A DNA stretch of 64,000 nucleotides, from positions 62,001-126,000 of IMG/VR virus record IMGVR_UViG_3300023174_000045, one strand, 5' to 3'. Under the pieces are notes generated by a model. It saw only the letters and a program-made list of their open reading frames with translations. It had not been told where the DNA came from and searched no databases. A program made the translations under genes and the position numbers. The number at the start of each line of letters is the position of its first letter. The stretch's first letter is position 1. Positions 38,290-63,056 of this stretch are shown here, in pieces.

Positions 38290-39290
38290 AAATAAACGAC
38301 ATTATCACAGAAAACTACAACGGCGAGTATGATGACGAAGCCGGCATGGTACAAGGCAACTTGTACACCATTGCCAAGGCAGCACAAGGCTTGCTGGACA
38401 CCATTGATGATCATGACAACTTGCCTGAGTGGGTGCAAGAAAAGATTGCCAAAGTAGAAGGCATGATGGTCACTGCATGGAATTACTTGCAGAGTCAAGA
38501 AGCACAGGGCATTGATCCCAAAATGTTTGAAGCTGCCAATGCCGCACAACAGGCTGCCATTGCCATCAACATGAAGAAGCATCACAAGAAGCCCAAGCAT
38601 GTAGACGAAAGTTCGGAGTTAGCAGAAGAGTTTGATCTCATTGAATCAATCATTGAACGCCTGGCCAAACACAATGGCGTTGATGCTGAAGTAATCTGGG
38701 CGGATTTAGAAACACTCACAGAAGATGAACTGTATGCTTTTGCTGTGACATCAGAGCCCATTATGGAATCACAAGACATGGCGGAAGGCTCACTAAACGA
38801 ACTCAGTAAAGATACTTTAAAATCTTATGCTAAAAAAGCAGTTCCTGATATGCAAACAAGTCAAAAAAGGTCAGAAATTGAGGCAGGAAAAGCAGCATCA
38901 ACAAAGGACGACAAAACTGCTAAAACGCATTACGATGCTGCAAAACAAGCCAGAGACAGAACAGAAAAAAGAATGGCCGGAATAAGTGGTGCTATTAAAA
39001 GAGTTACCAATCAAGGTATGGCGGAAGATTGGCAAAAGGCCAACAAGCGTGACAAAACAGATGGCATGAGCCGCAAAGCAGTCAACACCTATCGCAGAGA
39101 ACATCCTGGCAGCAAATTGCAAACTGCTGTGACCACCAAGCCCAGCAAGTTAAAGAAGGGCTCAAAGGCGTCAAAGCGTAGAAAAAGTTATTGCAGTCGC
39201 AGTCGTGGACAGATGAAAATGCACAGCATCAGTTGCGCTAAAACTCCTGACAAAGCCATATGCAAAGCACGACGTCGTTGGAACTGCTGA
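38286..39290 (+). CDS. modular putative internal virion protein
   Basis: MKINDIITE N-terminus; xxE linkers; basic C-terminal module ending ARRRWNC. Confidence 0.6.
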   Translation: MKINDIITENYNGEYDDEAGMVQGNLYTIAKAAQGLLDTIDDHDNLPEWVQEKIAKVEGMMVTAWNYLQSQEAQGIDPKMFEAANAAQQAAIAINMKKHHKKPKHVDESSELAEEFDLIESIIERLAKHNGVDAEVIWADLETLTEDELYAFAVTSEPIMESQDMAEGSLNELSKDTLKSYAKKAVPDMQTSQKRSEIEAGKAASTKDDKTAKTHYDAAKQARDRTEKRMAGISGAIKRVTNQGMAEDWQKANKRDKTDGMSRKAVNTYRREHPGSKLQTAVTTKPSKLKKGSKASKRRKSYCSRSRGQMKMHSISCAKTPDKAICKARRRWNC

Positions 39291-43599: not shown

Positions 43600-44373
43600 A
43601 TGACCGACTACTACGCCACACTAGGTGTGCCCCGAACTGCCACTGCTGACGAAATCAAACGGGCATTTCGTCGATTGGCCAGCCAGCATCATCCGGACAA
43701 AGGCGGCGATACTCAAAAGTTTCAGGCCATTCAAGAAGCCTATGCCACACTGGGCGACGAACAAAAACGTGCCGAATACAACAATCCCAGGCCACAGTTT
43801 TCAGGATTCAATGGCAGTGTCAACATCAATGACATATTCAACATGTTTGGGCATGGACACGGGTTTGCTCAACAGCCACGGCCACGCAGTCATGTGAGAA
43901 TGACCTTGACCATTACATTGAATGACGTGGCCACAGGTGGCAAACGCACTGTGAGCCTGGGCACAGCACAAGGCATAAGTGCTGTGGAAATTGAAATACC
44001 CATAGGCATCAATGACGGAGACAATGTGCATTATGAAGGCATCGGTCCCGGTGGCTCAGATCTTGTGGTACAGTATCGAGTTCAACCAGACCGAGTTTGG
44101 CAACGTCAGGATCTCAATTTAATTACTGAAACACGAGTGAGCATTTGGGATATAATATTGGGAACCGAATTGCACATTACCACAATTACCGGCAGTGTTT
44201 TGAGTGCCAATATACCTCCCAGAAGTCAACCCGGTGTGACCTTGAGACTGCGAGGAAGAGGATTGACCAACCGAAATGGCAACACTGGTGACATCATGGT
44301 GCGAGTGCAGGCCTTTGTGCCAGATTCCGTCGCACCCGAATTGCTGGCAGCTATTCAAGCACACCACAAATAA
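43600..44373 (+). CDS. DnaJ/CbpA-type chaperone
   Basis: J domain (YYATLGV, HPDKGG, AY.TL) plus DnaJ_C; no zinc finger. Confidence 0.92.
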
Positions 44374-44449
44374 ATATTTTGGCACAGTCAAGGTTGCACC
44401 CAATAACAAAATAGCATATAATAAACCATAGGACAACTCAAGGACCCAC

Positions 44450-48356: not shown

Positions 48357-48371
48357 CCATAAATACAGGGT

Positions 48372-49418
48372 ATGAAACAAGTTGTTATTATGCCCGGTGG
48401 CTTTCACCCTTTTCACGCAGGACACGCTGAGTTATATCAATCAGCGAAAAAAGCCTTTCCTGGCGCTGACGTGTATGTGGCTGCTACCAACGACACCAGC
48501 AACAGACCTTTCCCCTTTGCACTGAAAGAAAAACTGGCACAGTTGGCCGGAATCCCTGCAGGCCGATTTGTACAAGTCAAGTCACCGTTTGGTGCAGAAG
48601 AAATAACCAGCCGATACGATCCAGAAACCACACAGTTGATCTTTGTCAAGAGTGAAAAAAACAGCCGATCAGGTCCCAGCCCCGAAGGTCCTTTTCCAGC
48701 AGAGCCTGATCCTGCAACAGGCCAATTGCCCTTGGTCACTAGAGGAGCCAGAAAAGGCTTGCCTGTGAGTGATCGATTACAATATTATCAACCAGGTCAG
48801 CCAATGGCGCCCATGAGTCAACACTCTTATCTTGCTTATTTGCCCACTGTGGAATTTGGCCCTGGTATGACATCAGGGTCCGAAATACGCACAGCATGGC
48901 CAAAATTAAATGAAAAACGTAAAACTGCGCTGATAATGAGCTTGTATCCAAAGACACAAGCCAACCCCAAGTTAGCCGCCAATGTTGTGCAAATGCTGGA
49001 CAATGCCATGGGCACAGTGGACGAAGACATCAGCCGCAGAGGATTTTTACGTGGTGCAGGTGCTGCCGCTGGCATGGCTGCCGCAGGCGCTGTGGGTGCA
49101 AAAGAACTTGCCCGGCCAACAATCATAGCCATTGTACGAATTGGCGATCAGACAAAACAATTCAACCTTGGTACTAAATTTGATACTTCAAAACAAGCAG
49201 AAGATTTTGTTGCCAATTTTCTAGACAAACAAGGCATACAAGGATACACCATTGAAATACAACGTGGTTATACCAACGAAAATCAAGGCTGGGCTGCCAC
49301 ATATGAAGCAGACGGACTCACTGCCGGAACCGGTGTCACAGGTGGCATGCATGCCACATACCAAGATCGATACAATCAACCCACTACAGAAGACTATGTG
49401 GAAGAACGTCGGTCGTAA
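48372..49418 (+). CDS. cytidylyltransferase-like (HxGH) protein with C-terminal modules including an internal Tat-like signal
   Basis: MPGGFHPFHAGH, TSGSEIR; VDE-DISRRGFLRG. Confidence 0.7.
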   Translation: MKQVVIMPGGFHPFHAGHAELYQSAKKAFPGADVYVAATNDTSNRPFPFALKEKLAQLAGIPAGRFVQVKSPFGAEEITSRYDPETTQLIFVKSEKNSRSGPSPEGPFPAEPDPATGQLPLVTRGARKGLPVSDRLQYYQPGQPMAPMSQHSYLAYLPTVEFGPGMTSGSEIRTAWPKLNEKRKTALIMSLYPKTQANPKLAANVVQMLDNAMGTVDEDISRRGFLRGAGAAAGMAAAGAVGAKELARPTIIAIVRIGDQTKQFNLGTKFDTSKQAEDFVANFLDKQGIQGYTIEIQRGYTNENQGWAATYEADGLTAGTGVTGGMHATYQDRYNQPTTEDYVEERRS

Positions 49419-49475
49419 AAAATAACACACGCTGTTATAATCTTTAAATACTAGCACATTTTTAACGGAGAACCC

Positions 49476-50390
49476 ATGTCTGAAACCAAAGCCGACGCAG
49501 TGCCTACCACTGTACCCCCAACTGATCCTGTGCAAACAAATCAGAACAATATTCAAGTAAACATTGATTATTTGCGTACCACACGAGTGCATATCTGCAT
49601 GCCTTGTTATGGTGGACAGTTGACAGAACAATGTTTTATGAGTTATATCAAATGGGCCAACATGTGCCGTCAACTCAACATTGACTGGACTGTGGAAACC
49701 ATGACCAATGAATCATTGATCAGTCGCGCACGTAACACACTCACTGCCAAGTTCTTGCACAACAAAGAAAGCACACACTTGATGTTTATTGACGCTGACA
49801 TTGGCTGGGAACCCTGGCATTTGTTGGTCATGCTGGATGCACAAAAAGACGTCATCGGTGGATTGTATCCTATGAAAAGCCTGCCTGTGAAATGGTGTGT
49901 CAACGGTATTCCTGGCTTGGTAGAAGACCCCAACAGCCCACACATCGAAGTCACAAAAACTGGCACAGGTTTCTTGTTGATCAAGCGTGATGTGTTTGAA
50001 AAATTAGATGCACATCCTGCCACTAGACCTTTCAACAACGACATTGGCCTGCCCGCAGAACTCAATCCCTACATGAAAACCTACTTTGACACTGCTGTGC
50101 GTGAAAACCGCTACTATTCAGAAGACTGGACATTCTGTGAAAACTGGCGTGATCTGGGTGGACAAGTGTTTGTGGACAAGCGTATTTTGTTGCGCCACGT
50201 GGGCACATACACATTTGACTACAACACACACGAGCAACTGTACAAGGATCTCAAAGTGATGTTTGAGCCAACTATCACCGTGGCTGCCCCCGAGGCAACA
50301 CATGAATTAATCAGCGATGCCAATCCTGCTGTAGAGCCTGAAGTAATGGCAAGTAGCAAGAAGAGCAAGAAAGCCGCTGCCGCAGTGTAA
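49476..50390 (+). CDS. GT-A fold glycosyltransferase-like protein
   Basis: ESLISRARN, FIDADI, GTGFLLIKR.VF, SEDW.FC, HVG. Confidence 0.7.
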   Translation: MSETKADAVPTTVPPTDPVQTNQNNIQVNIDYLRTTRVHICMPCYGGQLTEQCFMSYIKWANMCRQLNIDWTVETMTNESLISRARNTLTAKFLHNKESTHLMFIDADIGWEPWHLLVMLDAQKDVIGGLYPMKSLPVKWCVNGIPGLVEDPNSPHIEVTKTGTGFLLIKRDVFEKLDAHPATRPFNNDIGLPAELNPYMKTYFDTAVRENRYYSEDWTFCENWRDLGGQVFVDKRILLRHVGTYTFDYNTHEQLYKDLKVMFEPTITVAAPEATHELISDANPAVEPEVMASSKKSKKAAAAV

Positions 50391-50405
50391 CGGTAAATAC
50401 AACTT

Positions 50406-53400
50406 ATGAATATTCATGAGTTGGACTCTTACAATCTTGGCGACGCAGTAAAGTTTCACCGCCGTCTCAATCCCAGAATCTGGGGGCGAGACGAGCATTT
50501 ACTGCCAGAAGTGCGCAACAAACTGCTGGCCATTGCCGCAGACTTTCAAGAATTCTTGGGTGTTGATAATCTCAACGTTGAAGATATCACCATATCAGGC
50601 TCCAACGCAGCCTACTCCTACACAAAAAACTCAGACATTGATCTACACCTTGTTGTAGCAATGCCCGACAATCCTGTGTATCAGGAATTGTTTAATGCTA
50701 AAAAATATCAATACAACGACGAGCACAACATAAAAATTGGCGGTGCTGATGTGGAATTGTATGTGCAACCTGCGGATCAAGCACACCACAGTCAAGGCAT
50801 TTACTCAATCAAAGATTCGGAATGGCGTCAGATACCACAACGCAAACGTGCGCAGATAGATGATTCTTGTGTGCGTGACAAAACAGCTGACTTGGATGCT
50901 AGAATACACGCCGCAATCAAAAGTCGAAATTTAGAATCCATTAGCACACTGTGGGACAAGATCAAAGCCATGCGCAAAAGCGGACTTGAACAGCACGGTG
51001 AATTTGGTTGCGAAAATATCTCTTTCAAACTGTTGCGCAACAAGGGCTGTATTGGTGCGCTAAAAGATGCAATGATGTCCGAAAAAGATCGTGAACTCAG
51101 TTTGCGTGAAGCACCTGCAACGCCATTTCGTTATGGCTATGGTTCTGAAGTTGACGAAGCCAGTTTGGCAGACATGCGAGCTGCCTTTGCCGCAGATGCC
51201 AAACCACAAAAACAAGAAGTATTTCACAGTCATGATGAATACGAAAAAGTTCGAAAACAACGCGAAGCTGAACGCGAAGAAAAAATCAAACAAATAGCAA
51301 GAAAACCAATGAAGCCGTGGTCGGGAGGCTTGGAAGAAGGCCATCAAGGTCAACCTTACAGTAGTGAAGATGGTGTTGCTGCCAGTACCAAAATGTTCTG
51401 TGAAGACAATGATGACACCCTGGTACACGACTTTATTCAACACACTGCCATGGAACTGGGCATTGATCCCATGCCCGAAATTGTGTTGCACACTGATCCT
51501 GAATGGAGCACCAACAATCACAGTTTTGGCCGCTATGACCCCGAAAGCCACACACTCAACGTCAGCATGCCCAATCGTCACATCCTGGATGTGTTGCGTA
51601 CTGTGGCACATGAACTGGTACACTGCTCACAAAATCAACAGCATGGCAACTTGCCTCCAAATGCAGGCGAAACTGGTAGTCGCTGGGAAAATGATGCCAA
51701 TGCCCGAGCTGGCATAATCATGCGTGACTGGGCCAACACACATCCTGAACACTTTGAATTGCCCCCACTGGACGAAAGTGCGTCAGGATACATTCCTAAA
51801 AATAAAAAAGAAGCAGCCATGCCACAGTATGCCATGGCCTTGAGCGTGGATATCAAGCCAGGACAGACTGGCAAAGAAGCCAACAAGCTGGCATTGCAAA
51901 CAGGCCGCAATGGCGAGCCAGGCTTGTTGATGAAAACTGTGAACTTGCGTGAGTATAAGATGCCACAGCCCAGTCAAGGTCCTGGACGATATAGAGACTT
52001 GAATGAACCACTGGGTCCAGAGACTCCGCCCGAAATGCCAGATGGCACAATCAAAGTAGATGTATCGGACATGTACGACTGGTACAAACTGGGTCAAAAG
52101 ATATCAGACTTAGGCAGTATCAAACCTGGTGAACTAGGGTCAGGTCCTCCAAGTACAGTGTTTGCATTTGGCTCAGAAGATTTAGAAAACATGTACAGTC
52201 ATGAACTCACAAAACTGGGTTTAAAAACACACGACTTGGATGAGCCTGGCGAAGAAGACATTGACGAGAGTGCAAGCGATTACCAAATACACAACACTGA
52301 GAAACTGGATCGTGTGCTGGCCAAGTGTTGTGCTATGATTGAGCGAGGGCAACAAACGGATCCTGAGCGTTACGGTATGGTTGCTGCCTGTGTGATTGAT
52401 CCTGACAATAAACAGGTGTACGGCATCAACTTACCCGGCACTGATGGCACACGCAGACATGCTGAACGTGTGGCCATCAACAAGTACCGCAAGCAGCACG
52501 GTGACATTCCTAAAGGCAGCATTGTGGTCACGACACTGAGTCCCTGCAATAGCCCCATGGATGAACGTGCAGGCGAGAGTTGCAAAGACTTACTAAACAG
52601 TGCGGGCATACACAAAGTGTATTGTGGTTACATTGACCCCACACAGCACGATGATGAGGATGCTGACTTTGTTACAGGTGTCACACAAAATGACGACTTG
52701 TGGGACAGTTGCAAAGCATTTGCCGACACATTCTTACATGAAGATGACTTAGAAGAAGGAATAAAGTCTGCATTGGCCACTGCGGCTTTGGCAGGAACAA
52801 TGGCCATGGGGGCTCAAGCAAAAGCACCAACTATGGTTCAACAAATCGTCGAGCCTGGTGATACAATTTACAGCATAGCAAGACAAACTGGTGCAGATCC
52901 CAAAGAGATATACAAACTCAACAAGATGGATCGTAATACCAAGCTAGAGATAGGACAAAAGGTTCTGGTACCCGATTATGCTAGGCCTATTAGTAAAATG
53001 CCTGCCTCTGTAACACCCACAGTCAAACAAGAACCTGTAAAAGTGGCACCTCCTGCACCAACATTAAAAGATAAAATCTCATCAATGCTACCTAAATTTC
53101 CAGATGATGACGAAGGTGTTGTATTATTGAGCGACAATCCTGACGCAGAAGCCGCGCTACAAACTGCTGCCAAAGCCGCAGGACTTAAAGGTTCTGAACT
53201 GGCACAGTTCATGGCACAGACCCGACACGAAAGTGCAAACTTTGCACACATGAAAGAAATTGGCACTAAGAAAAAATTTGATCATTATGAAAAAAATCGT
53301 ACTCTAGCAAGACGATTAGGCAATACAGTCAAAGGTGATGGAGAAAGATTTAAAGGCCGTGGGTTCATTCAGTTGACCGGACGTGACAACTATACCAGAG

Positions 53401-53630
53401 CCAGCCAACAAATCTTTGGCGATGACCGACTGGTAAGAAATCCTGACTTGGCCAGCAAGTTGGATGTGGCAGCAAAAGTTGCACTGTGGTATTGGAAAAA
53501 TCAAGTTAGGCCCAAAGTCAATGATTTTAACAATACCACACAAGTTGTCAAAGCAATCAATGCTGACGAACCAATGAATGTTGTAAAACAACGTCACAAC
53601 AAATTCAAAGAATATTTGGCGGTGTTATGA
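50406..53630 (+). CDS. five-enzyme mosaic protein: nucleotidyltransferase, zincin, deaminase, LysM, GH19
   Basis: GSNA...SDIDLH; AHELVH..E; HAE...TLSPC...C; VEPGDTIYSIA...L.IGQKVLVP; FMAQT.HES...GRGFIQLTGRDNY. Confidence 0.85.
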   Translation: MNIHELDSYNLGDAVKFHRRLNPRIWGRDEHLLPEVRNKLLAIAADFQEFLGVDNLNVEDITISGSNAAYSYTKNSDIDLHLVVAMPDNPVYQELFNAKKYQYNDEHNIKIGGADVELYVQPADQAHHSQGIYSIKDSEWRQIPQRKRAQIDDSCVRDKTADLDARIHAAIKSRNLESISTLWDKIKAMRKSGLEQHGEFGCENISFKLLRNKGCIGALKDAMMSEKDRELSLREAPATPFRYGYGSEVDEASLADMRAAFAADAKPQKQEVFHSHDEYEKVRKQREAEREEKIKQIARKPMKPWSGGLEEGHQGQPYSSEDGVAASTKMFCEDNDDTLVHDFIQHTAMELGIDPMPEIVLHTDPEWSTNNHSFGRYDPESHTLNVSMPNRHILDVLRTVAHELVHCSQNQQHGNLPPNAGETGSRWENDANARAGIIMRDWANTHPEHFELPPLDESASGYIPKNKKEAAMPQYAMALSVDIKPGQTGKEANKLALQTGRNGEPGLLMKTVNLREYKMPQPSQGPGRYRDLNEPLGPETPPEMPDGTIKVDVSDMYDWYKLGQKISDLGSIKPGELGSGPPSTVFAFGSEDLENMYSHELTKLGLKTHDLDEPGEEDIDESASDYQIHNTEKLDRVLAKCCAMIERGQQTDPERYGMVAACVIDPDNKQVYGINLPGTDGTRRHAERVAINKYRKQHGDIPKGSIVVTTLSPCNSPMDERAGESCKDLLNSAGIHKVYCGYIDPTQHDDEDADFVTGVTQNDDLWDSCKAFADTFLHEDDLEEGIKSALATAALAGTMAMGAQAKAPTMVQQIVEPGDTIYSIARQTGADPKEIYKLNKMDRNTKLEIGQKVLVPDYARPISKMPASVTPTVKQEPVKVAPPAPTLKDKISSMLPKFPDDDEGVVLLSDNPDAEAALQTAAKAAGLKGSELAQFMAQTRHESANFAHMKEIGTKKKFDHYEKNRTLARRLGNTVKGDGERFKGRGFIQLTGRDNYTRASQQIFGDDRLVRNPDLASKLDVAAKVALWYWKNQVRPKVNDFNNTTQVVKAINADEPMNVVKQRHNKFKEYLAVL

Positions 53631-54934
53631 GAGCACATGAATTTCTATACAAAAAACCTCTTGATGAAGATGTTGAGAATTTTCCCATTGCCAACGTGCG
53701 CAGACCCAACGGTGCCATTGGTAACCAAGGTGTCAACACCGAACAAGCAGCAGATGTGTTGACTCATGCTGCCGGCATGCAGGTATCGCCAGACATGACC
53801 ATGCGTCAAATGGTGGATGCACTACGAGCAGATCCTGCGGCACAACAACGACTGAGACAATTTGTACAACAAAACCCTGTGACAGTGTATGCACTGCCAG
53901 ATGGTTCATATCATTTGCAAGATGGACATCACAGAACATTTTTGCTGAACTTGCTGGGTGATGAAACAGTGCCAGCCATAGTCAAAGAAGATGTCAAGGA
54001 AGCCAACACTGTGGAGTTTGAAGGGTTGACTTTGAAAGTAATCAAAAGCGGACATGAGTTAGTAGTTGATGCCCTTGATGACTGGGGTAACAAGGTACTA
54101 GGACATGTACGATTCAACATAGGCGACAACAAAGAATTGGATCCGCAAGATCTCTCTGTGGATGAGAAATATCAAGGCCAAGGTATTGCCCGTGTCATGT
54201 ATGATTATATCAAAAGCCAGGGCTATACCATTGTTAGAAGTTGGGATCAAACTGATGCAGGCGCAGGCTTTTGGAACAAGCATCGCGGAGAAGATGTTCG
54301 AGTTTGGGAAACCTTTGACAACCCTTACAAGGGCACGTGGGAAAAAAGCGATTATGGTGACGTTGATCTAAACACAAAATTACCAGACGGCACATATCTC
54401 AACATCATGTTCAATCAAGAATATGACGGAGAAGGCGACGAAGTCGTTCAAGTTGAATTCCACAGAAACAACAGCCAAGAAGTCACGGGCGAGGGCGATG
54501 CACAGCGTATCTTTGCCACAGTGTTGGATGCTATACAAAAATACATTAAAAAATACAAACCCGAAAGACTAAGTTTCTCAGCAAGCAAATCAGTGGACAT
54601 GGACGCAGACGATGTTGAACACTTCAATCCAGAAAGCCGTGCCAAGTTATACACCAGACTGGTACAACGATATGCTGGCACCTGGGGTTATCAGGCTCAG
54701 GTCAGCGACGAAGGCGATGTGGTTATATATCAACTGACTAGAACCATAGCAGAAAACTTTGCAGACGGTAAAAATCCCGGCCGCAAAGGACTCAGTAAGC
54801 GCATGGGTGTGAACACCAAGGCCAGTGTTAGTAGTTTGCGCAACACAGCCAAACATTCATCAGGTGAGAAACAACGCATGGCCCACTGGCTGGCCAACAT
54901 GAAAGCTGGTAGAGCAAAGGCACGAAGAAAATGA
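53627..54934 (+). CDS. mosaic protein: ParB-like, GNAT, unknown domain, basic C-terminal module
   Basis: LQDGHHR; VDEKYQGQGIA..MY..QT.AG..FW. Confidence 0.75.
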   Translation: MRAHEFLYKKPLDEDVENFPIANVRRPNGAIGNQGVNTEQAADVLTHAAGMQVSPDMTMRQMVDALRADPAAQQRLRQFVQQNPVTVYALPDGSYHLQDGHHRTFLLNLLGDETVPAIVKEDVKEANTVEFEGLTLKVIKSGHELVVDALDDWGNKVLGHVRFNIGDNKELDPQDLSVDEKYQGQGIARVMYDYIKSQGYTIVRSWDQTDAGAGFWNKHRGEDVRVWETFDNPYKGTWEKSDYGDVDLNTKLPDGTYLNIMFNQEYDGEGDEVVQVEFHRNNSQEVTGEGDAQRIFATVLDAIQKYIKKYKPERLSFSASKSVDMDADDVEHFNPESRAKLYTRLVQRYAGTWGYQAQVSDEGDVVIYQLTRTIAENFADGKNPGRKGLSKRMGVNTKASVSSLRNTAKHSSGEKQRMAHWLANMKAGRAKARRK

Positions 54935-56094
54935 AAATACGACAAATTGTAGAAGCCGCTGAACGTGGCAAAACACTGGGCGGATTCCCCATCAAAGTAT
55001 TGCATGTGGAACACGGTGCCACAGACGAAGCACTCAAACTGGATGCACCACAACAGTCTTGGAGCAACCAAGACATGCAAGACTACTTGAGTCGTGTTAA
55101 AACTGGTACCAAGACCAAAGCCGACAAGTTCCGACCCATCATACACGGCAGCAATGTCAAAGCCATTACCAAAGATGACGGTGGTACAGAATGGGATTTG
55201 GATGATTTAAAAAGTCAGATCATGCAGCCGCCAAGACAGATCTTGGGTACCAATGCCAAAATGGCCAAGAGCAAACAAGAAGGCGCCATCACATATGACC
55301 TAACACTGCCGGCATTGAGTGGCATTGTGGTGGATGAAGACACAGGCGAATTTGTGGAAGTGATAACCTGCCCTGGTGCTGGCGAGTGCCAAACCTACTG
55401 CTATGCTAGAAAAGGTGGTTATGTGATGTTCCCAGCCAGTTCAATGAGTGCGGCACAGGCCTTGAACTTCTTGGTCAACCACCCTTCGGACTACATGGAG
55501 AAGTTTGACGGCGAAGTCAAAAAAGCCGCTGCATTAGCCAGCAAAAACGGCATCAAGTTGTTGGTGCGCATACATGATGCTGGCGACTTCTTCTCCAAAG
55601 AATACTACAATCTCATGATGGATGTGGCCAAGAACAATCCAGATGTAAAGTTCTATTTCTACACCAAGATGGGACAAATAGTAACAGACCCTGACACACC
55701 CGACAACGTGGTCAAACAGTTCTCACCTGGCGCCAAGAGTCGTGAAGTCAAAACAGTTCAACTGCAACGTGATGCTGGCAAACATGTCAAAGACGCGGTG
55801 ACATTGCCCAAGGACATGTTCCGTGATTTGTTTGTGACAGATGCCAAGGGCAAGTATGTCAAGGACGAAAAGGGACGTACACAGGTTCGCAGTCCCCAGG
55901 CGTGGCAACAGTTCCGTCAAGAACTGGGCGCAAAATACAACATTGACCCCGACACTGTGATCACATACGATGAAATGAACCGCATACCCGAAGGCCCTGC
56001 ACCCAAATGGAACGTTGTAGTGTTTCCTGCAGGGCATGGAGACCTAGGCGCCAGCAGACTGGACGTGGCAAACCAATTCTTGATGTTCCACTAA
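54931..56094 (+). CDS. GP88-like Cys-cluster protein
   Basis: N.KM, LPA, TCPGAGECQTYCYA.KG, RIHDAGDF, YFYTK. Confidence 0.7.
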   Translation: MKIRQIVEAAERGKTLGGFPIKVLHVEHGATDEALKLDAPQQSWSNQDMQDYLSRVKTGTKTKADKFRPIIHGSNVKAITKDDGGTEWDLDDLKSQIMQPPRQILGTNAKMAKSKQEGAITYDLTLPALSGIVVDEDTGEFVEVITCPGAGECQTYCYARKGGYVMFPASSMSAAQALNFLVNHPSDYMEKFDGEVKKAAALASKNGIKLLVRIHDAGDFFSKEYYNLMMDVAKNNPDVKFYFYTKMGQIVTDPDTPDNVVKQFSPGAKSREVKTVQLQRDAGKHVKDAVTLPKDMFRDLFVTDAKGKYVKDEKGRTQVRSPQAWQQFRQELGAKYNIDPDTVITYDEMNRIPEGPAPKWNVVVFPAGHGDLGASRLDVANQFLMFH

Positions 56095-56104
56095 ATATAT
56101 TATC

Positions 56105-57229
56105 ATGAATTTATACGACCTGTTCAACGAAGAAAAAGTGCGCCTTGACCCCAAGTGCTGGAAGGGCAAAAAGATTGGCAATCCCAAGACCAAGATGAAG
56201 GGCGGCGTGCGTGTAAACAACTGTGTGCCTGCTGAGAGCATAGCAGAAAATGCCGGGCAACCACTCACAGTTCAACAATTGGCCGCCATCAGTGATGAGG
56301 CCTTGGATCAAGCATATGGGTATGGACGTAGTACACCCAGCAACAACTTTGGCTGGCAAGCCAATTTGAAGTCAGCTGCCTATGCCAAGCAAATGATTGA
56401 TCAGGGTGTGACAGACATTGAAGCCATCAGTGATGCTATTCACAAAGGATGGAACACTACTGCACAGGCATTTGTACAAGATCCTGAACAGTTTGATGAC
56501 ACAGCAAAACTGGCAGCAGCCGGCAAACTAGAAGCCAAACTTCAACAGCGAGCACAGTTGATGAAACAAAATTATGCTCAGTTACCTGAAGAAGAAAAAG
56601 AAAAAGACCGTGTGGTTGCACGAGCACTGTTACAGGCCATTCGTGGATCACAACAACCAGATGTGGCAGAAGGCGTGATGTACGGTGCAGAAAACTTGCA
56701 CGTAGGCGACGATGTGATCATTAGTGGCGATGTCAATCTCAAAGGTGCCACTGGCGTGATTGACAGCTTTGGCCAAGACAAACGTTTTGTTGTTGTCAAC
56801 CTGTACAATCATGGCAAGCACAGTTTCCACTCTAGTGATGTCAGCATCAACGACCATGATAATGATGAACACGATGACGATGTACTGGATGAAAAGTCTG
56901 TGAGCCAAGCACAGTTCCGTACCATGGCAGCGGCTGCACACAATCCCAAGTTTGCCAAGAAAGTTGGCATCAGTCAAGATGTTGCCAAAGAGTTTCACTC
57001 AGCAGACAAGCACAGCAATTACAAAAAGTTACCAGATCGTACCACTGAAGGCGAGCAACAAAAGGGTGCAGACTATCGTGACCCTAAGGAAGTTGACTAC
57101 GATGACGAATACGATGCCATGGTTGCCAGAGTTAAAAAGTTAGCCGGACTGGGCCCTATGCGAACTGTGTACGATCCCGCCAAGCGACAATATCGCAACA
57201 TGCCCACAGCAGTGCAGCCTAAAAAATGA
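56105..57229 (+). CDS. mosaic protein with RyR-like and KOW-like modules
   Basis: CWKG...NCVP module; AIHKGW...YAQLPEEEKEKDR; VGDDVIISG..KGATGVI. Confidence 0.65.
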   Translation: MNLYDLFNEEKVRLDPKCWKGKKIGNPKTKMKGGVRVNNCVPAESIAENAGQPLTVQQLAAISDEALDQAYGYGRSTPSNNFGWQANLKSAAYAKQMIDQGVTDIEAISDAIHKGWNTTAQAFVQDPEQFDDTAKLAAAGKLEAKLQQRAQLMKQNYAQLPEEEKEKDRVVARALLQAIRGSQQPDVAEGVMYGAENLHVGDDVIISGDVNLKGATGVIDSFGQDKRFVVVNLYNHGKHSFHSSDVSINDHDNDEHDDDVLDEKSVSQAQFRTMAAAAHNPKFAKKVGISQDVAKEFHSADKHSNYKKLPDRTTEGEQQKGADYRDPKEVDYDDEYDAMVARVKKLAGLGPMRTVYDPAKRQYRNMPTAVQPKK

Positions 57230-57723
57230 GAGCCCAAGAGTTTGTTGCTGAAGGCAAACAACCTGGAAAGCCAGTGGTTGATGCCATACAGAAAGTATTA
57301 CCCATGGCACAAGAAATATGGTTTCATGGTAGTCGTGCCACAGGTCGGCATCGTAGAAATAGCGACACTGACATCTTGGTGGTTGTGCCTGACAACCTTG
57401 TGGGTGATCAGTATCTTGCGGTGGTAAGAATACTACAAAAACTTGCTTCTCACTTTGACAACTATGACATACAGCCTACCAAGTCAGGCACTAACATACA
57501 TCGTATAGCACAAGAAGAAGGTCGATTGTTATGGTCCAGCAAGCTAGGTGTGGCAGAAGAACAACTAGACGAACTCAGTTTCCTAGGATCAGAATGCACC
57601 AAAGACTGTTCAGGACATCGCGCTGGATATGAGTGGTCAAAACGCAAGGGCCTGCGTCAAGCCAACAGCCTGTACAGTCCCAGTTTCAACAAAGGTGCCG
57701 CCTTGGCAGTGGCCGGCAAATAG
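57226..57723 (+). CDS. minimal nucleotidyltransferase (MNT-like) with a Cys module
   Basis: IWFHGSRATG...SDTDILVV...DI; CTKDCSGHRAGY.W. Confidence 0.75.
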   Translation: MRAQEFVAEGKQPGKPVVDAIQKVLPMAQEIWFHGSRATGRHRRNSDTDILVVVPDNLVGDQYLAVVRILQKLASHFDNYDIQPTKSGTNIHRIAQEEGRLLWSSKLGVAEEQLDELSFLGSECTKDCSGHRAGYEWSKRKGLRQANSLYSPSFNKGAALAVAGK

Positions 57724-57764
57724 TCCCCAAAAAGTTATCCACGTAGATTTCGCTAAATACTTCT

Positions 57765-58070
57765 ATGCAAACATTTTTTGTTAGAGTAGAATGTGACGTC
57801 ACTGCCAAAGTTCATGAGCAGCCCTTTCGTTACAGAGCCTATGTCAACAACGAACTGTTCACAGAACGAACATGGATTTGGGAAAATTGTTACTTGGAAG
57901 AAAACTTTCAGATATCTGCACCAGCTGGTGTTTACCCCATAAGATTCGAAACTGTGGATAATGCCAATGGTCGGATCAAAGCACGTAATTACAGAGTTGT
58001 TGCAGGCCCTGGAAGAATAATGGAATATCAAGGTGAAATAGCCGTGGAGATATCAAATGAGAGCAAGTGA
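57765..58070 (+). CDS. hypothetical protein
   Basis: After TAAATA (57754). Confidence 0.7.
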   Translation: MQTFFVRVECDVTAKVHEQPFRYRAYVNNELFTERTWIWENCYLEENFQISAPAGVYPIRFETVDNANGRIKARNYRVVAGPGRIMEYQGEIAVEISNESK

Positions 58071-58275
58071 AATTGTGGAATCAGCGTCAGCAGGCGCCTC
58101 AGCCGCAGGTGGCATTGCACCTGTGAGCATGCCCATGGGCGTGGTGTCAAGATCTGGAGGTTCCATGTTGTCAGGTAAATATGTAACTGGATCAGATCCT
58201 ACGCCTAACACGCCCAAGGAATACAAAAGGAATAAAAATGCTCGCGGACAGTTTAAAAACTCTATTAGCAACTGA
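58057..58275 (+). CDS. small putative internal virion protein
   Basis: MRASEIVE-SASAGASAAGGIA. Confidence 0.65.
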   Translation: MRASEIVESASAGASAAGGIAPVSMPMGVVSRSGGSMLSGKYVTGSDPTPNTPKEYKRNKNARGQFKNSISN

Positions 58276-58681
58276 ATATGCTTTCAGTATCAAGGCTCAG
58301 TTATTTCACTGGAACGTGGAAGGCCCTGATTTCGCTCAACTGCATGAGTTTTTTGGCAACCTGTATGAAGAGGTCTACGACGGTTCGATAGACAAAACCG
58401 CAGAATACATACGTGCCATGGGCGACTACGCACCTGGCAGCTTTGAACGTTTTGCTGAACTCAGCATCATTCAAGGACAAACAAAAATCCCACGAGCCAG
58501 ACTCATGATCGAAGAACTGCTGGCCAACAATGGTCAGCTGTTGGAACTACTCAACGAGAATTTCGCCATTGCCGAACAAGAAAATCAACAAGGCATTGCT
58601 AACTTTATTGCAGAACGCATTGATGCACATCAGAAACATGCATGGATGCTGAGAAGTTTCCTGAAAGACAATAGAGCATGA
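58238..58681 (+). CDS. dps: Dps/ferritin-like protein
   Basis: HWNVEGPDF.QLHEFF..LYE...D..AE.IR...H.KHAWML. Confidence 0.93.
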   Translation: MLADSLKTLLATEYAFSIKAQLFHWNVEGPDFAQLHEFFGNLYEEVYDGSIDKTAEYIRAMGDYAPGSFERFAELSIIQGQTKIPRARLMIEELLANNGQLLELLNENFAIAEQENQQGIANFIAERIDAHQKHAWMLRSFLKDNRA

Positions 58682-59610
58682 GCAACGACATTAGATCAAT
58701 ATTAGACCGACTGGCCACAGTGGAAGGTAAGTTGAGTCCAGCGCAACAAAAAGTACCACAACTGCCTGCGCTGTTCAAACCACGACACATTCGTGCCTTG
58801 GATTCAAAAACAGATCCTGCTCATCCCATGGACGGATACATGGTGGGTGATTCAATAGAGCCTAAAAAAACTGCGCTTGAAGAAGCCATGGCAGAAATTG
58901 AAGAAGACATGTTGAGCAAGGTCAAGAAAGACCTAACAACATATTTGGATCGACTGGAAAAGAAGGTACGTGTTGACCGTGACTTAAAAGACAAAGCTCA
59001 GGACGCTGTACAAAAAGGCAAGGCCGAAGAAGAGATTGAAGAGTTTGCACCACCAGGTGGTGATGACCGCGAACCCGACGAAGAAGAAATTCTACGACGC
59101 CTGGCTGCACAGTGGTGGAATGGAACGGAACAACAAATGGCCAAGGCACAAAACACATTGTCTGCAATGGGCTGGGAAATTGGTCAAGACGAAAGTGGTG
59201 ATGACGATGCTGGGGTATTCCTTGTACGTGCCGGCGATGTCAACGGTGATAGTTACATGGCGTTCAATCACAGTGACTTAGATTTAAACGAAGAAATTGA
59301 CACTGATCCTGCTGCCATTCACGGACCGTCAGATCCTGGAGACACTGAAGTAGCACACGCCGCTGAACTAGATGTAGACAACACACTCAGCGCACCACAA
59401 GCACCTGTGGCCACATTTGAAATGGCCGACGGTGCGGCACTGGAATGCTGGGGCGATGACAATTCGGGCTATGAAATTCGACATGGAGAACGTGCATTGC
59501 CCAGTCGCTTTAAGAGCCTGGATGACGCTGGCATGGCAGTGAAGTTGTATCAAGCTCGACAGCGAGCACAGCAACGCAACTCAGATGCAGATTACATAGA
59601 AGAACGATAA
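58678..59610 (+). CDS. acidic modular protein (putative internal head/scaffold-like)
   Basis: Many xxE linkers; ends DYIEER, resembling the DYVEERRS end of the 48372 protein. Confidence 0.6.
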   Translation: MSNDIRSILDRLATVEGKLSPAQQKVPQLPALFKPRHIRALDSKTDPAHPMDGYMVGDSIEPKKTALEEAMAEIEEDMLSKVKKDLTTYLDRLEKKVRVDRDLKDKAQDAVQKGKAEEEIEEFAPPGGDDREPDEEEILRRLAAQWWNGTEQQMAKAQNTLSAMGWEIGQDESGDDDAGVFLVRAGDVNGDSYMAFNHSDLDLNEEIDTDPAAIHGPSDPGDTEVAHAAELDVDNTLSAPQAPVATFEMADGAALECWGDDNSGYEIRHGERALPSRFKSLDDAGMAVKLYQARQRAQQRNSDADYIEER

Positions 59611-59612
59611 TC

Positions 59613-62600
59613 ATGATCACAAGCGATTTATTCACCAACAACTCATCTGCCTTGTTTGAAAACACAGGCCCAGTCACACACCGCGTTGGTCTCACAGTGA
59701 CTGACCCCAACCACCCCATGGTTTCAAAGCGTGGCGAAACTATTCAAAAGACTGTGCGTGTCAAAGGTGACGACCGTGAAAAAGCCATCAACGGTGCCAT
59801 TGCACACCTTCGCCGCAAAGGTTACAAAGTACATGACCATCACTATATTGGCACAGTGGATCAAGGTGTGTCAGAAGGTCAGTTGGAATTAAACACACCA
59901 GATCCTGTTGTAGTGGTACAAGATCAACAAGGTAAAATTCTAGATAAAATAAATTTATCAGTGGCTGCACAAAAATACAAATTGGGTCAACCACAAAACA
60001 TAAAGAATCAGTTGGCGCATCAAAATTATACCAAAATTGGTAGTTACACCATAGTATCTCCCATGAGCGGGCAGCCACAAGATCAAACAACCACTGGACA
60101 GAAAACTACGTTTGCCACGCCTGGCGTGGTGGAAGATATGCCACATGGTCAAGACATAAATGATCCGTTAGACCCTAGCTACGGTGGTAACCGCAATCGT
60201 TCAGTCAAGCAGAATATCCAAGCCCGTTTAGGTCACGATGAACGTGGTGATGCAAGAGAGCGAGCTGGTCAACCACGCAGTACTCATGCACGACACAAAC
60301 CACAACTGCCAGAAAGTTCAATGGATGACGATGCTATTTGGCGTCAATATGGACAGTATAACGCACAAGACTTGATGCAGGAATTTCCAAATCTAAATCC
60401 CAAGGATGCACAGACCATAGTAAATTACGCCGAGTATGGTTGGTCATCTTCCAATCCACAAAAATTTAGAAATGAAGTGGTACAGCGAGTTAAAATGGCC
60501 ATGGGTCAACAAGGTGTGAACGAAGTCAGCCTAGGTGACTATCGTAAAAAAGCACAACTAAGTCAAGCAGGTGCCAAGATAAACAAGTTCTTTGACCGTG
60601 ACGATCCTGCAGCGGTTGCCGCTGCTGATCAAACCATTGCCAAGCGAGAAAAGGGCCTGGCACGTGCTGATGCTAGAATCAAGCCATACACACCTCCTGC
60701 ACAAGATGCTGAAAAACACCAACGTGATTTAACCGCCAAGTATCCCAACATTGACGAATTAGTGGCCGCAGCCGAACAGCGCCGTGACCCCAATTACGAC
60801 TACGCCGAAGGTGATGCTTATTATCGTGGCCGCGAAGCTGAACAAAACTATCAAAAATTAAAACAAATCCAACGTGTGATTCAAGGCTTAAATGAATCTT
60901 GTGCCGCAGTAAAAAAAAATTATCTGTATGAAGGCCTAGACCGTGACAGCGTGAACACAGTCAAGCTGTGGGAAAGTGCTGGCCAACGCATTGTGGAAGC
61001 CCAACTCACAGTTGATCAAATCAATCAATTGTTCAAATCCGCAGAACAAGACGCTACTGCTGCTGGTGGCAACAGAACCATGGTTGGCAAGGGCAAAGAC
61101 GCTGCTGTAGCAGTCAACCGAGCCTGGGAAGATTTAAAGACCAAGGTACAAAATTCTGGTCCTATCAAGAGTGTGGATGCTGCCTATGATTCGGCAGCAG
61201 AAAAATTAAAACAAGCCACTGGTGGTGACCAGGGCGTGATGAAGTACGTGCAAAAGTATCGTGACTTTGCCAAGGCACATCCTGTGGCACAGAGTTTGAT
61301 TTACTCGGCCTTGATTGCTGCCGCAGGTATTTCAGGAGCTGGTGTAGGTGGGGCCGCTGCCTTAGGTCTGTTCAAACTTGTGGACAAACTGTTGCAAGGT
61401 GAAAAGTTCTCCAGTGCCGCCTACTCAGGTGCTAAGACTGGCGCAATGGCCTATGGGGCCAGCAAGGTTGCTGACTACTTTAGAGGACCACAAACACCGC
61501 AAGGTGGCGGTGGTCTTGATCCCAAGGATCCTGATGTTGCAGCATTCCGACGAGATGTAGCCGACATGCGTGGGTACGATAATTACATGACTAAAAATCC
61601 CACATCATCGTTGAGTCCAGAACAGTATGCGGCAAAAATAGGCAAAGCTTCTGCATTGACACCAGATGGTTCTGGATTGACATCGCAGGCCAGCATGATG
61701 AATAATATTGCCAGCAAAATGGGATTGCCACCCGGTGCTCACCAAGCAACATTCCAAGGCGGTGTACCAGTGACCATAGATGGCAAAGCTGTACCATTGA
61801 ATTTGTTGTCAGGAGATCAGCAAAGAAATATCGAAGCCGCTCGTGCTATGCGACAGGCTATGTCCGGATCACAGTCTCTTGCTCAGAAAGCGGCCGCTGC
61901 TGCCGCCGCAGCGGACAAAACTTATGAATCACTCAATGTTCATACCAGTCACAAATTAACTGATGCAGACTTGTATTTCATATTCAGTGCCGCCACACAA
62001 CTCAACGAAGGCATCTGGGACAGCATCAAAGGCACTGCCGGCAAGGCTGCTGGCAAGGCTGCTGACTGGGCCAAAACACAGGGTACCAATCTCACCACCA
62101 AAGTCACTGCTGACAAATTAAAGAGTGCATGGCTCAAGGCTGGTTCACCCACAGACAGTGACCAAGTTTACAATGTGATGACTCAGGCCGGGGTGGCACC
62201 ACAAATATTAGACACTGTGTACAAGACCATGGGCGTCCCCACGTTCAAAGAAAAAGCCCTAGCAAGACCAACAACACCTGCTTTTTCAAGCGCACCAATA
62301 CCTGCTGGACCAGCATCTAAATCAGCAGCAGCCGCTGGGTCAGCACCAGCGACTACAACGCCAGCAAGTCCTGAAGTCACGCCTAACGCCGCTACACCAG
62401 CAACAGCCGATGCCCCCAAGACAAAACAGTTGGGCACTGGTACTGGTCGTATCAATCCTGCCACTGGACGACCCTGGACTCCTAGCGAGCTCAAAGCCAA
62501 GTATGCGCAACCACAGTCAACAGCGCCCACACCAGACTCAGAGCCACCTGCACCAGAACTTACTTCGCCAGAGCCTGCTTTAAAATCTAGCCCAACCGCA

Positions 62601-63056
62601 CCGCAAAGCCCTGAAGAAATTAGAAAAGCCAAACAATCAGCTGCTGCTCTTGCTGCACAACAGGCCATGGGAGATGTTGCTTCACCAGCACCTGCACCTA
62701 CTGTGGCGTCTACCCCGGCTCCAGCATCATCTGCCGCGCCTTCGGGTCCTCCTGGATTCAATGCTGGCAACTTGGCACAACTTCCCGGTATGGCACAATA
62801 CATGCAACAAAAGCCGGCTGCGGCCAAACCTGCACCCAATTTTGCTCGAGGACCTGCTGCATATGGAAAGACCACAATGAATGTTGGACCAACTGCAACC
62901 AAACCAACAGCCACAGCAGCACCAGCTGGCAAAAAGCCCACTGCACAACAGCAACAAGAATATTATAAATCTTTGGGATTGGCAGAGTCTCTGACCTGGA
63001 GCCAAAATTTTGATCCTGGACGCAGTCTGTATCGTAGAATGAAACAGGATATTTAA
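59613..63056 (+). CDS. large modular protein with hydrophobic central segment and Pro/Ala-rich tail
   Basis: 1147 aa; QGVSE, QGVNE, GLNE, QLNE, GLAE linkers. Confidence 0.7.
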   Translation: MITSDLFTNNSSALFENTGPVTHRVGLTVTDPNHPMVSKRGETIQKTVRVKGDDREKAINGAIAHLRRKGYKVHDHHYIGTVDQGVSEGQLELNTPDPVVVVQDQQGKILDKINLSVAAQKYKLGQPQNIKNQLAHQNYTKIGSYTIVSPMSGQPQDQTTTGQKTTFATPGVVEDMPHGQDINDPLDPSYGGNRNRSVKQNIQARLGHDERGDARERAGQPRSTHARHKPQLPESSMDDDAIWRQYGQYNAQDLMQEFPNLNPKDAQTIVNYAEYGWSSSNPQKFRNEVVQRVKMAMGQQGVNEVSLGDYRKKAQLSQAGAKINKFFDRDDPAAVAAADQTIAKREKGLARADARIKPYTPPAQDAEKHQRDLTAKYPNIDELVAAAEQRRDPNYDYAEGDAYYRGREAEQNYQKLKQIQRVIQGLNESCAAVKKNYLYEGLDRDSVNTVKLWESAGQRIVEAQLTVDQINQLFKSAEQDATAAGGNRTMVGKGKDAAVAVNRAWEDLKTKVQNSGPIKSVDAAYDSAAEKLKQATGGDQGVMKYVQKYRDFAKAHPVAQSLIYSALIAAAGISGAGVGGAAALGLFKLVDKLLQGEKFSSAAYSGAKTGAMAYGASKVADYFRGPQTPQGGGGLDPKDPDVAAFRRDVADMRGYDNYMTKNPTSSLSPEQYAAKIGKASALTPDGSGLTSQASMMNNIASKMGLPPGAHQATFQGGVPVTIDGKAVPLNLLSGDQQRNIEAARAMRQAMSGSQSLAQKAAAAAAAADKTYESLNVHTSHKLTDADLYFIFSAATQLNEGIWDSIKGTAGKAAGKAADWAKTQGTNLTTKVTADKLKSAWLKAGSPTDSDQVYNVMTQAGVAPQILDTVYKTMGVPTFKEKALARPTTPAFSSAPIPAGPASKSAAAAGSAPATTTPASPEVTPNAATPATADAPKTKQLGTGTGRINPATGRPWTPSELKAKYAQPQSTAPTPDSEPPAPELTSPEPALKSSPTAPQSPEEIRKAKQSAAALAAQQAMGDVASPAPAPTVASTPAPASSAAPSGPPGFNAGNLAQLPGMAQYMQQKPAAAKPAPNFARGPAAYGKTTMNVGPTATKPTATAAPAGKKPTAQQQQEYYKSLGLAESLTWSQNFDPGRSLYRRMKQDI

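Follow-up and report, generated by a model that had tools for sequence, protein, structure and literature searches.

The 64,000-nt window analysed here (positions 62,001 to 126,000 of the IMG/VR record IMGVR_UViG_3300023174_000045) comes from a giant phage related to T4 and PA5oct. Between the genes for ClpA and DNA polymerase it carries a block of plus-strand genes, many of whose products start with a similar short peptide, the leader, followed by interchangeable modules. The phage encodes an unusually complete Clp set (ClpA, ClpX, ClpS and two ClpP) next to this cluster. A late-promoter-like TAAATA motif at 48360-48365 lies 12 nt upstream of the first gene, and like motifs at 49445, 50394, 56092 and 57754 head the other transcription units of the cluster. 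Of the 29 TAAATA in the window, 15 lie 11-41 nt upstream of called starts on the same strand, including those of the tail-fibre and baseplate genes.

The first two genes of the block have no leader. The gene at 48372-49418 encodes a 348-aa cytidylyltransferase-like protein, in which GTVDE (Glu218) is followed by a Tat-signal-like stretch and a C-terminal module; it is uncertain whether it belongs to the payload set. The 304-aa protein encoded at 49476-50390 (phrog_1574) is probably not cargo. The gene at 50406-53630 encodes a 1074-aa putative polyprotein, in which the leader is followed by a nucleotidyltransferase (residues 6-235), a spacer, an HExxH module (334-457), an "ASGYIP" module (458-516), an unknown region, a deaminase (621-788), LysM and a GH19 muramidase. 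Joints after Glu235, Glu333, Glu457 and Glu516 are supported by comparison with relatives. The 435-aa putative polyprotein encoded at 53627-54934 consists of a leader (to Glu14), a ParB-like module, GNAT, a phrog_16075 module (229-376) and a basic "NFADGK" module (377-435), with joints after Glu228 (codon 54308-54310) and Glu376 (codon 54752-54754).

In the 387-aa protein encoded at 54931-56094, the leader MKIRQIVE is followed by a conserved TLGGFxVxxLxVE segment, the joint TDE/ALKLDAPQ (the slash marks the joint here and below) and a GP88 domain. Relatives insert other modules exactly between the leader segment and the A[IL]KL[ND]APQ start. The 374-aa protein encoded at 56105-57229 contains the leader MNLYDLFNE, a Cys-rich module, an unknown module, a small "LHVGD" domain (190-262) and a phrog_16759 module. 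The 165-aa protein encoded at 57226-57723 bears the consensus leader MRAQEFVAE, a Pol-beta-type nucleotidyltransferase, the joint LGVAE (Glu111) and a small Cys-rich module. The last transcription unit begins with a leaderless 101-aa ORF at 57765-58070, followed by a 72-aa leader-bearing protein at 58057-58275 (MRASEIVE), which is conserved as 55-72-aa leader proteins in relatives, and by a leaderless ferritin/Dps-like protein at 58238-58681. The 310-aa protein encoded at 58678-59610 has a different conserved N-terminus (MSNDI) and holds the "EFAPPGGDDREP" module, which relatives carry inside leader-bearing GP88 proteins. The last gene, at 59613-63056, encodes a 1147-aa protein with a variant leader (to LFE, Glu16), a small "VTDPNHP" domain (17-88), the joint QGVSE (Glu88) and a long unannotated Ala/Pro-rich remainder. 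Outside the block, the gene at 38286-39290 encodes a 334-aa protein (leader MKINDIITE) with two internal x-x-M-A-E joints and a basic C-terminal DUF6321 module, which belongs to the same system.

A sequence-only reading had described similar short N-termini with a Glu on consecutive late genes, with unrelated domains separated by (L/I/V/M)-x-E linkers. This observation was confirmed and proved stronger than first described. All of its ORFs and N-termini were found at the stated coordinates. The pattern M-[KRN]-[AIL]-x-[EDQ]-[ILF], followed by a Glu, was matched by 7 of 85 called window genes (38286, 50406, 53627, 54931, 56105, 57226 and 58057) against 0.075 expected from composition (Poisson p about 2.5e-12), although the pattern was written after seeing the data. 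It matched 0 of 444 internal Met positions. The variant leader of the 1147-aa protein, M-I-T-S-D-L-F followed by L-F-E, recurs in relatives. Nevertheless, the genes are not all consecutive leader-bearers, as 48372, 49476, 57765 and 58238 lack the leader and 58678 has at best a different N-terminal motif. Among the domains named in that reading, HMM searches confirmed two nucleotidyltransferase modules, the dCMP/cytidine deaminase, LysM plus GH19 muramidase, GNAT and GP88. The ParB-like module is below the Pfam cut-off here, but homologues carry PF02195. The zincin call is weak, resting on an HExxH motif and sub-threshold hits (Tox-MPTase3, E 0.026), and the motif is absent from most cluster proteins, while the RyR call is not supported (E 0.17).

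Comparison with 33 related contigs gave the leader consensus MRAQEF[IV]xE. The leader was carried by 149 of 796 ORFs in related loci and by 103 of 419 non-redundant proteins, with Glu at position 8 or 9 in 65%, and DNA encoding MRAQEF[IV]xE occurs in at least 120 stretches of viral contigs. These unrelated leader-bearing proteins are clustered in a variable locus, with 56 module orders among 94 proteins and more than 3000 homologues with many architectures. In a 50-kb T4 region, the same core motif within the first 13 residues picked out only the prohead proteins gp24, gp21, gp22, gp68, gp2, ipII and ipIII among 113 ORFs. PA5oct gp150, a virion protein detected by mass spectrometry and encoded between portal and S77 protease, starts with exactly the leader of window gene 38286, and about 45 environmental head modules do likewise. 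In the relatives L241, L245 and L253, portal, S77 protease (Pfam E 3e-28) and capsid genes are followed directly by leader-bearing genes, one of which carries the deaminase and NFADGK modules with LSE and IDE joints.

The claim that (L/I/V/M)-x-E separates the domains cannot be judged inside one protein, because the motif is common, but it holds in comparative tests. Modules that follow the leader Glu in one protein sit inside another protein, which defines module borders independently of the motif. At 61 unique internal sites aligned to a post-leader start, Glu was found at −1 in 64% against a background of 6.6% (p 5e-31) and V/L/I/M/F at −3 in 72% against 23% (p 1e-15), while other offsets were at background. 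These statistics count related sequences and the p values overstate independence. Among Glu joints, P3 is V/L/I/M/F in 95% (V 47, L 28, I 9, M 7 and F 4%). The splices are exact, for example NLRE/DIENFPIANV and GVAE/GKQPG. Within the window alone, the sites are 2.4 times denser outside HMM domain envelopes than inside (25 against 9 sites, p 0.016). An AlphaFold model of the 435-aa protein placed the joints Glu228 and Glu376 in segments of pLDDT below 50 (221-228 and 375-379), predicted to be flexible, and five of its six [VLIMF]xE sites lie at the leader or at module borders. However, one [VLIM]xE site lies inside the folded GNAT domain and 9 of the 34 window sites lie inside domain envelopes. 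The motif alone therefore does not predict cutting.

The sequence-only reading had missed that the joints are conserved as DNA. The commonest joint, QGVAE, is written in a fixed DNA string (GGTGTGGCGGAA), with GCG as the Ala codon in 77% against 7%. It recurs about 100 times in this clade only, so it may also act as a recombination joint. Three in-frame copies occur in the window (39012-39026, 57544-57558 and 59862-59876) against 0.4 expected. The leader is likewise conserved as ATGAGAGCACAAGARTTT and the linker as CAAGGTGTGGCGGAA.

The presence of a Glu-specific prohead protease in the genome had been set beforehand as a test. No S77 protease was found in the window, in the related cluster loci or in the 121 kb examined (contig positions 34.6-156 kb). 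The contig is probably partial and, by synteny with PA5oct, the head module would lie beyond its start. PA5oct, L241 and L245 have an S77 protease beside leader-bearing genes. Scaffold proteins of L241, PA5oct and T4 carry 6.5-7.8 sites per 100 aa against 1.3-1.9 in capsid and portal proteins. The cargo proteins have no homologues in PA5oct, and the syntenic PA5oct block holds leaderless fibre-like proteins.

Taken together, these results partly support the earlier interpretation, namely that packaged polyproteins are cut in the prohead and delivered as a cocktail of host-takeover or anti-defence enzymes; its core passed every computational test that we could run. We consider it more likely than not that the cluster is a plastic locus of capsid-internal cargo proteins. 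In this view, each cargo gene would be transcribed late, and the leader of 8-16 residues, by analogy with T4, would dock the product onto the scaffolding core while the prohead assembles. The prohead serine protease (family S77, T4 gp21 type) would cut after Glu in [V/L/I/M]-x-E and remove the leader and, because the same motif joins the modules, would also cut each multi-module protein into separate enzymes and small basic proteins, which would stay in the head with the DNA and enter the host at infection. We therefore propose that the joints, being also written in conserved DNA, double as short homologies at which modules are swapped between genes and between phages. The leader, the joint motif and its placement at module borders, the module shuffling and the DNA-level conservation are shown by our analysis, whereas for this uncultured phage virion presence and packaging, cleavage, injection, the recombination role and the activity of the enzymes in the host, including any host takeover or anti-defence, are inferred.

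Other explanations appear less likely. It is possible, though doubtful, that the proteins are capsid-targeted and lose only the leader, and that the internal Glu linkers are flexible spacers or recombination scars in proteins injected intact. T4 Alt keeps its body intact (PMC5694885), so internal cleavage is not a necessary consequence of packaging, and polyvalent proteins such as the N4 virion RNA polymerase are delivered full length (PMC5512222). The DNA-level conservation shows that the linker spreads by copying, which alone could explain its presence at module borders. Nevertheless, the amino-acid pattern reproduces the protease P3-P1 pattern even where the DNA string differs (RVWE, TIAE, NLRE and PLDE), which a scar model does not require, and the joints are exposed linkers in the model, which an S77 protease in the same prohead would be expected to cut.

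Processing by the HExxH (zincin-like) module of the polyproteins, or by a packaged stand-alone leader-zincin protein, as proposed for polyvalent proteins (PMC5512222), seems quite unlikely. An HExxH module is present in the 1074-aa protein and also exists as a 122-aa leader-plus-zincin protein in relatives, but its zincin assignment is below HMM thresholds and most leader proteins with Glu joints have no zincin module. Moreover, the joint motif equals the leader's own end and the motif enriched in scaffold proteins of relatives that encode S77. Least likely is that the shared N-terminus is a translation-initiation or mRNA feature of late genes, or a tag for the phage-encoded Clp machinery, on proteins that act in the infected cell without being packaged. 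The conserved leader DNA and the neighbouring Clp set are in line with this. However, tail-fibre and baseplate genes with the same promoter motif lack the leader, the motif in T4 and PA5oct is specific to prohead proteins, and neither the retention of the leader inside a fusion protein nor the Glu rule at internal joints is explained.

The T4 internal proteins (IPI, IPII and IPIII) and Alt likewise carry a short leader ending in hydrophobic-x-Glu, shared by otherwise unrelated proteins of a plastic locus, with late expression, docking to the scaffold core, leader removal after Glu and injection with the DNA (PMC3012670, PMC5694885), the late expression and the steps that follow it being only predicted here. 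The present leader is one residue shorter in register (core at residues 5-9 against 6-10 in T4 ipII/ipIII). The present system also differs in that the cargo is multi-module enzyme chains of up to 1147 aa instead of small single-domain proteins, that the protease-type motif also joins the modules, that the family is very large and that the joints are conserved as DNA. The polyvalent proteins of phages and conjugative elements described by Iyer, Burroughs, Anand, de Souza and Aravind in 2017 (PMC5512222) also combine unrelated effector-type domains (nucleotidyltransferase, deaminase, GNAT, ParB-like, HExxH peptidase and muramidase) in combinatorial architectures, and both are predicted to be packaged in the head, processed and delivered at invasion. 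That work proposes processing by embedded zincin-like peptidases and, in the text searched, reports no capsid-targeting leader and no prohead-protease sites, while here the modules are delimited by a defined [V/L/I/M]-x-E joint and the chains start with a T4-type leader. A genomic link of leader-bearing genes to head morphogenesis and packaging genes was observed in the relatives L241 and L245, while in the window the cluster lies between ClpA and DNA polymerase.

In the phiKZ-like giant phages (phiKZ, 201phi2-1 and SPN3US), many head proteins are cut after Glu, sometimes at several sites, by a gp21-related protease and are then ejected into the host (PMC5694885, PMC7411985). Their motif has a small residue at P3 (A/S/G-x-E) and their propeptides are often over 100 residues, in contrast to the hydrophobic P3 and short leaders found here, and shuffling of enzyme modules has not been described there. 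Promoter-stem-loop elements, short conserved DNA cassettes that mediate modular shuffling in T4-type genomes, are likewise short repeated DNA at module borders offering homology for the exchange of neighbouring modules. Those elements are intergenic and regulatory, while the present repeat is a 12-15-nt in-frame coding string that also encodes a protease-type site.

A further, tentative possibility is that the leader and the 15-nt in-frame linker form a dual-purpose "splice-and-cleave" grammar. The same short string would be a recombination joint, letting a phage population reassemble effector modules in any order, and a prohead-protease site, so that any new chain is resolved into separate working enzymes inside the capsid. 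Cleavage may also unmask new N-terminal signals; for example, a predicted Tat-type export signal sits directly after the Glu in three proteins, which could send an injected module on to the periplasm.

The system would extend the T4 capsid-targeting paradigm from a few small internal proteins to a large, rapidly reshuffled arsenal of injected enzymes in giant environmental phages, and would give polyvalent proteins a concrete addressing and processing mechanism. The leader and linker would be natural parts for loading and releasing foreign proteins in phage heads. Moreover, the long-standing question of what phages deliver besides DNA would become testable, as the leader and joint motif would allow cargo to be predicted from sequence alone in metagenomes.

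The source of the window, whose positions are 62001-126000, is the 225,080-bp metagenomic viral contig IMGVR_UViG_3300023174_000045, also recorded as Ga0214921_10000048. Its closest cultured relative is Pseudomonas phage PA5oct, and the clamp loaders of the two are 52% identical. Gene order is shared over a long range, namely ClpX-S21-HSP20-ClpS, ClpP, clamp loader, DnaJ-ClpA, DNA polymerase, a radical-SAM gene that by position matches the 7-carboxy-7-deazaguanine synthase of PA5oct, and RNase H. Relatives of the window that carry the same cluster reach 345-355 kb, so the 225-kb contig is probably partial. The phage encodes a near-complete Clp and chaperone set (DnaJ, ClpA, two ClpP, ClpX, ClpS and HSP20) plus ribosomal protein S21, found at window positions 43600-46702 and in the further loci L228 (1382-1966), L229 (7782-8351) and L503 (1-2090), and this set is partly syntenic with PA5oct. 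Porin-like and phosphate-binding-protein-like genes, and a block of sugar-nucleotide genes with GTP cyclohydrolase I and PTPS (QueD-type) genes that point to 7-deazaguanine synthesis, were seen at L503:6275-8487 and in L377 and L500 (source contig outside the window). Within the window, a D-Ala-D-Ala carboxypeptidase-like gene (Peptidase_S11), an amidase, and a ferritin/Dps-like gene embedded in the cluster without a leader were found at 3082-3879, 6850-8214 and 58238-58681, respectively.

The sequence-only reading had claimed that consecutive late genes begin with similar short leaders containing a Glu, and this observation was confirmed, since every ORF and N-terminus that it named exists. 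The pattern M-[KRN]-[AIL]-x-[EDQ]-[ILF] starts 7 of 85 called genes where 0.075 are expected from composition, and it matches none of 444 internal Met positions, though the pattern was written after seeing the data and the p value is only indicative. In about 103 kb of the source contig scanned with a slightly wider version of the pattern, the only real genes marked are eight leader genes, all but the 1147-aa gene also fitting the strict pattern, and seven of them lie within 13 kb. One doubtful case after the DNA polymerase gene was also matched. Nevertheless, five genes inside the range of the proposed cluster, those at 48372, 49476, 57765, 58238 and 58678, do not carry the leader. Two leaderless cluster proteins, those of 48372-49418 and 58678-59610, end in the same short motif, D-Y-[VI]-E-E-R. 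Of the domains named beforehand, HMM searches confirmed two nucleotidyltransferase modules, a deaminase, LysM plus GH19 muramidase, GNAT and GP88. ParB-like is weak here but present in homologues. The zincin assignment rests on HExxH and sub-threshold hits and could not be confirmed by HMM, while the RyR call is unsupported and was rejected. Megablast of the cluster against phage genomes gave no match, and tblastn of the GP88 and 1147-aa proteins gave only distant or trivial hits.

A scan with the GP88 protein fetched 33 related loci at 61-100% identity. In these loci and the window, 149 of 796 called ORFs start with the leader, as do 103 of 419 non-redundant proteins. The profile is M, R/K, A/I/L, x, E/D, F/L/I, I/V/L, x, E, with Glu at position 8 or 9 in 65%, and what follows the leader is extremely diverse. 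DNA encoding MRAQEF[IV]xE occurs in at least 120 stretches of the viral collection, where only a few matches are expected by chance, and many of these stretches resemble the window in tetranucleotide use. A second leader class, M-[IL]-[IT]-[SN]-[DE]-[LF]-[FY], includes the 1147-aa gene. In all GP88 proteins (window 54931-56094, residues 9-33, and homologues in the related loci L005-L036) a conserved segment, TLGGFxVxxLx[IV]E, follows the leader ahead of the variable inserted modules, and it may be a second docking element.

To relate the leader to the prohead, the motif was calibrated on the T4 sequence. A strict-register leader PSSM does not score the T4 internal proteins because of a one-residue offset, and it was therefore replaced with a register-free core, [EDQ][FIL][IVLF]xE within the first 13 residues. 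In a 50-kb T4 region this core hits 7 of 113 ORFs, gp24, gp21, gp22, gp68, gp2, ipII and ipIII, all of them prohead or head-internal proteins. In PA5oct, the 73-aa virion protein gp150 is encoded between the portal gene and gp152, which Pfam assigns to the S77 prohead protease family (E 5e-24), and gp150 begins with exactly the leader of window gene 38286. About 45 environmental PA5oct-like head modules have the same arrangement. A second clade resembles the window in tetranucleotide use (r about 0.86), and its loci L241, L245 and L253 show portal, scaffold, S77 protease (E 3e-28), gp22-like scaffold and capsid genes, followed directly by leader-bearing genes. One of these, L245:14576-16192, carries the deaminase and NFADGK modules of the window behind ..LSE/ and ..IDE/ joints (the slash marks the joint). 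Scaffold proteins of L241, PA5oct and T4 carry 6.5-7.8 [VLIM]xE sites per 100 residues, against 1.3-1.9 in capsid and portal proteins. The capsid proteins cluster such sites in their first 42-65 residues, and T4 has one at Glu65, the known cut (PMC5694885). The protease specificity therefore seems conserved in these lineages, although this is an inference.

A Glu-specific prohead protease encoded by the phage itself had been set as a condition of the hypothesis, and it was searched for by several routes. An HMM built from 14 S77 proteases found nothing in the window, in the related loci L001-L036, or in the 120 loci from the leader search. Partial scans of viral contigs with the PA5oct protease, two protease alignments and two capsid proteins never returned the source contig or its large relatives. 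Tetranucleotide matching picked no head-module locus as the same phage, and a 72.5-kb contig from the same sample turned out to be the orthologous cluster of a relative. Walking the source contig from 34.6 to 156 kb revealed no head genes, and no S77 protease was found in 121 kb of contig. By synteny with PA5oct the head module should lie beyond the contig start. The PA5oct block gp299-310, which is positive by mass spectrometry and syntenic with the cluster, was initially taken as support for packaging. This was dismissed because those virion proteins are leaderless and fibre-like. The cargo proteins have no homologues in PA5oct.

As [LIVM]xE is common, one protein proves nothing, and module borders were therefore defined independently. 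Every place was taken where an internal segment of one protein aligns to the first residue after the leader Glu of another protein. Among 61 unique contexts, Glu occupies -1 in 64% (background 6.6%, binomial p 5e-31) and V/L/I/M/F occupies -3 in 72% (background 23%, p 1e-15), while all other offsets are near background. Where -1 is Glu, P3 is V/L/I/M/F in 95%, P2 is often Ala, P4 is Gly or Asp, and P5 is Gln or Lys. The sites are related sequences, so these p values overstate independence; the peak is nevertheless sharp. The splices were found to be exact. Close relatives (GP88 93% identical) join the 'ASGYIP' module of the window's 1074-aa protein to the ParB module of the 435-aa gene as ..NLRE/DIENFPIANV, while in the window that ParB module follows the leader as ..PLDE/DVENFPIANV. 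Similarly, the nucleotidyltransferase of the 165-aa gene follows ..FVAE/ in the window and ..GVAE/ inside the polyprotein of the relative. One relative has lost the stop between two neighbouring genes (L017:7117-11058) and keeps the downstream leader, MKIAHILKE, in frame in the middle of a 1313-aa read-through chain, which shows how a leader can become an internal joint.

Mapping of the window modules onto 94 non-redundant proteins gave 56 different module orders. A database search with the 435-aa protein found more than 3000 homologues, whose added domains include ADP-ribosyltransferase, NUDIX, zeta-toxin-like kinase, deaminase and GH19. The most frequent C-terminal modules are small and very basic. 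NFADGK (window 53627-54934, residues 377-435) has 16 K+R against 2 D+E in 59 residues, and DUF6321 (38286-39290, residues 247-334) has 27 against 6 in 88, which fits DNA-binding internal proteins. In the protein of 48372-49418 (residues 216-239) a twin-arginine (Tat) signal-like stretch, RRGFLRG..AAAG, sits directly after a Glu joint, and in two relatives (L010:8641-9744 and L013:8108-8803) it sits directly after the leader Glu, so that cleavage would expose an export signal at the new N-terminus. However, the Pfam TAT_signal hit is below cut-off (E 0.0034).

An AlphaFold model of the 435-aa protein (60-sequence alignment, mean pLDDT 72) has five segments with pLDDT below 50, namely 1-33, 206-212, 221-228, 327-330 and 375-379. 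The two joints obtained by comparison, Glu228 and Glu376, fall in these segments. Of the six [VLIMF]xE sites in the protein, one is in the leader region, two are at the ParB/GNAT border and two are at these joints, and only one lies inside a folded domain of the model. A fold search with the model returned only GNAT folds. Across five window proteins, [VLIM]xE sites are 2.4 times denser outside HMM envelopes than inside (p 0.016).

A feature absent from the sequence-only reading was found at the DNA level. The commonest joint, Q-G-V-A-E, is written with almost fixed codons. In 60 G-[VLM]-A-E joints, Ala is GCG in 77% (background 7%), Gly is GGT in 82% (background 37%) and Val is GTG in 82% (background 31%). 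The 12-mer GGTGTGGCGGAR occurs about 100 times in 50 loci of this clade, up to six copies per locus, and does not occur in the other roughly 450 loci examined, which include PA5oct, T4 and some 330 head-module loci. The window has three degenerate in-frame copies, each in a leader-bearing gene, against 0.4 expected. The leader DNA is likewise conserved. Peptide function alone does not require this, and the joints are being copied as DNA. We propose that they serve as short homologies for module exchange, which is an inference.

The motif TAAATA, which resembles the T4 late promoter, occurs 29 times in the window. Fifteen of these lie 11-41 nt upstream of called starts on the same strand, including five in the cluster, those of the tail-fibre and baseplate genes, and that of the gene upstream of 38286. 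Start and stop overlaps (ATGA) link the genes within the cluster units. A TAAATA motif lies 11 nt upstream of an Fe/Mn superoxide dismutase gene at 15992-16534 (+), whose product carries an N-terminal extension of about 16 residues, with ..LVE and ..KLE, before the Pfam domain start. It may be another capsid-targeted enzyme.

Taken together, the interpretation offered by the sequence-only reading, that these ORFs are polyproteins packaged into the prohead, cut into separate domains and delivered at infection, is partly supported. What the analysis demonstrates is the shared leader, the hydrophobic-x-Glu pattern at independently defined module borders, the shuffling of modules and the conservation of the joints as DNA, whereas presence in virions, cleavage, injection and any effect on the host are inferred from sequence alone, as is the role of the joints in recombination. 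The literature searched holds no description of this combination of features that could be found. The system differs from phiKZ-type ejection proteins in the P3 residue and in leader length (PMC5694885). It looks like the polyvalent proteins of Iyer et al. 2017 (PMC5512222), although that work, in the text searched, proposes zincin-mediated processing and mentions neither a targeting leader nor prohead-protease sites. On the present inference, the cluster would work like the T4 internal proteins, which are diverse proteins sharing only a capsid-targeting sequence (PMC3012670).
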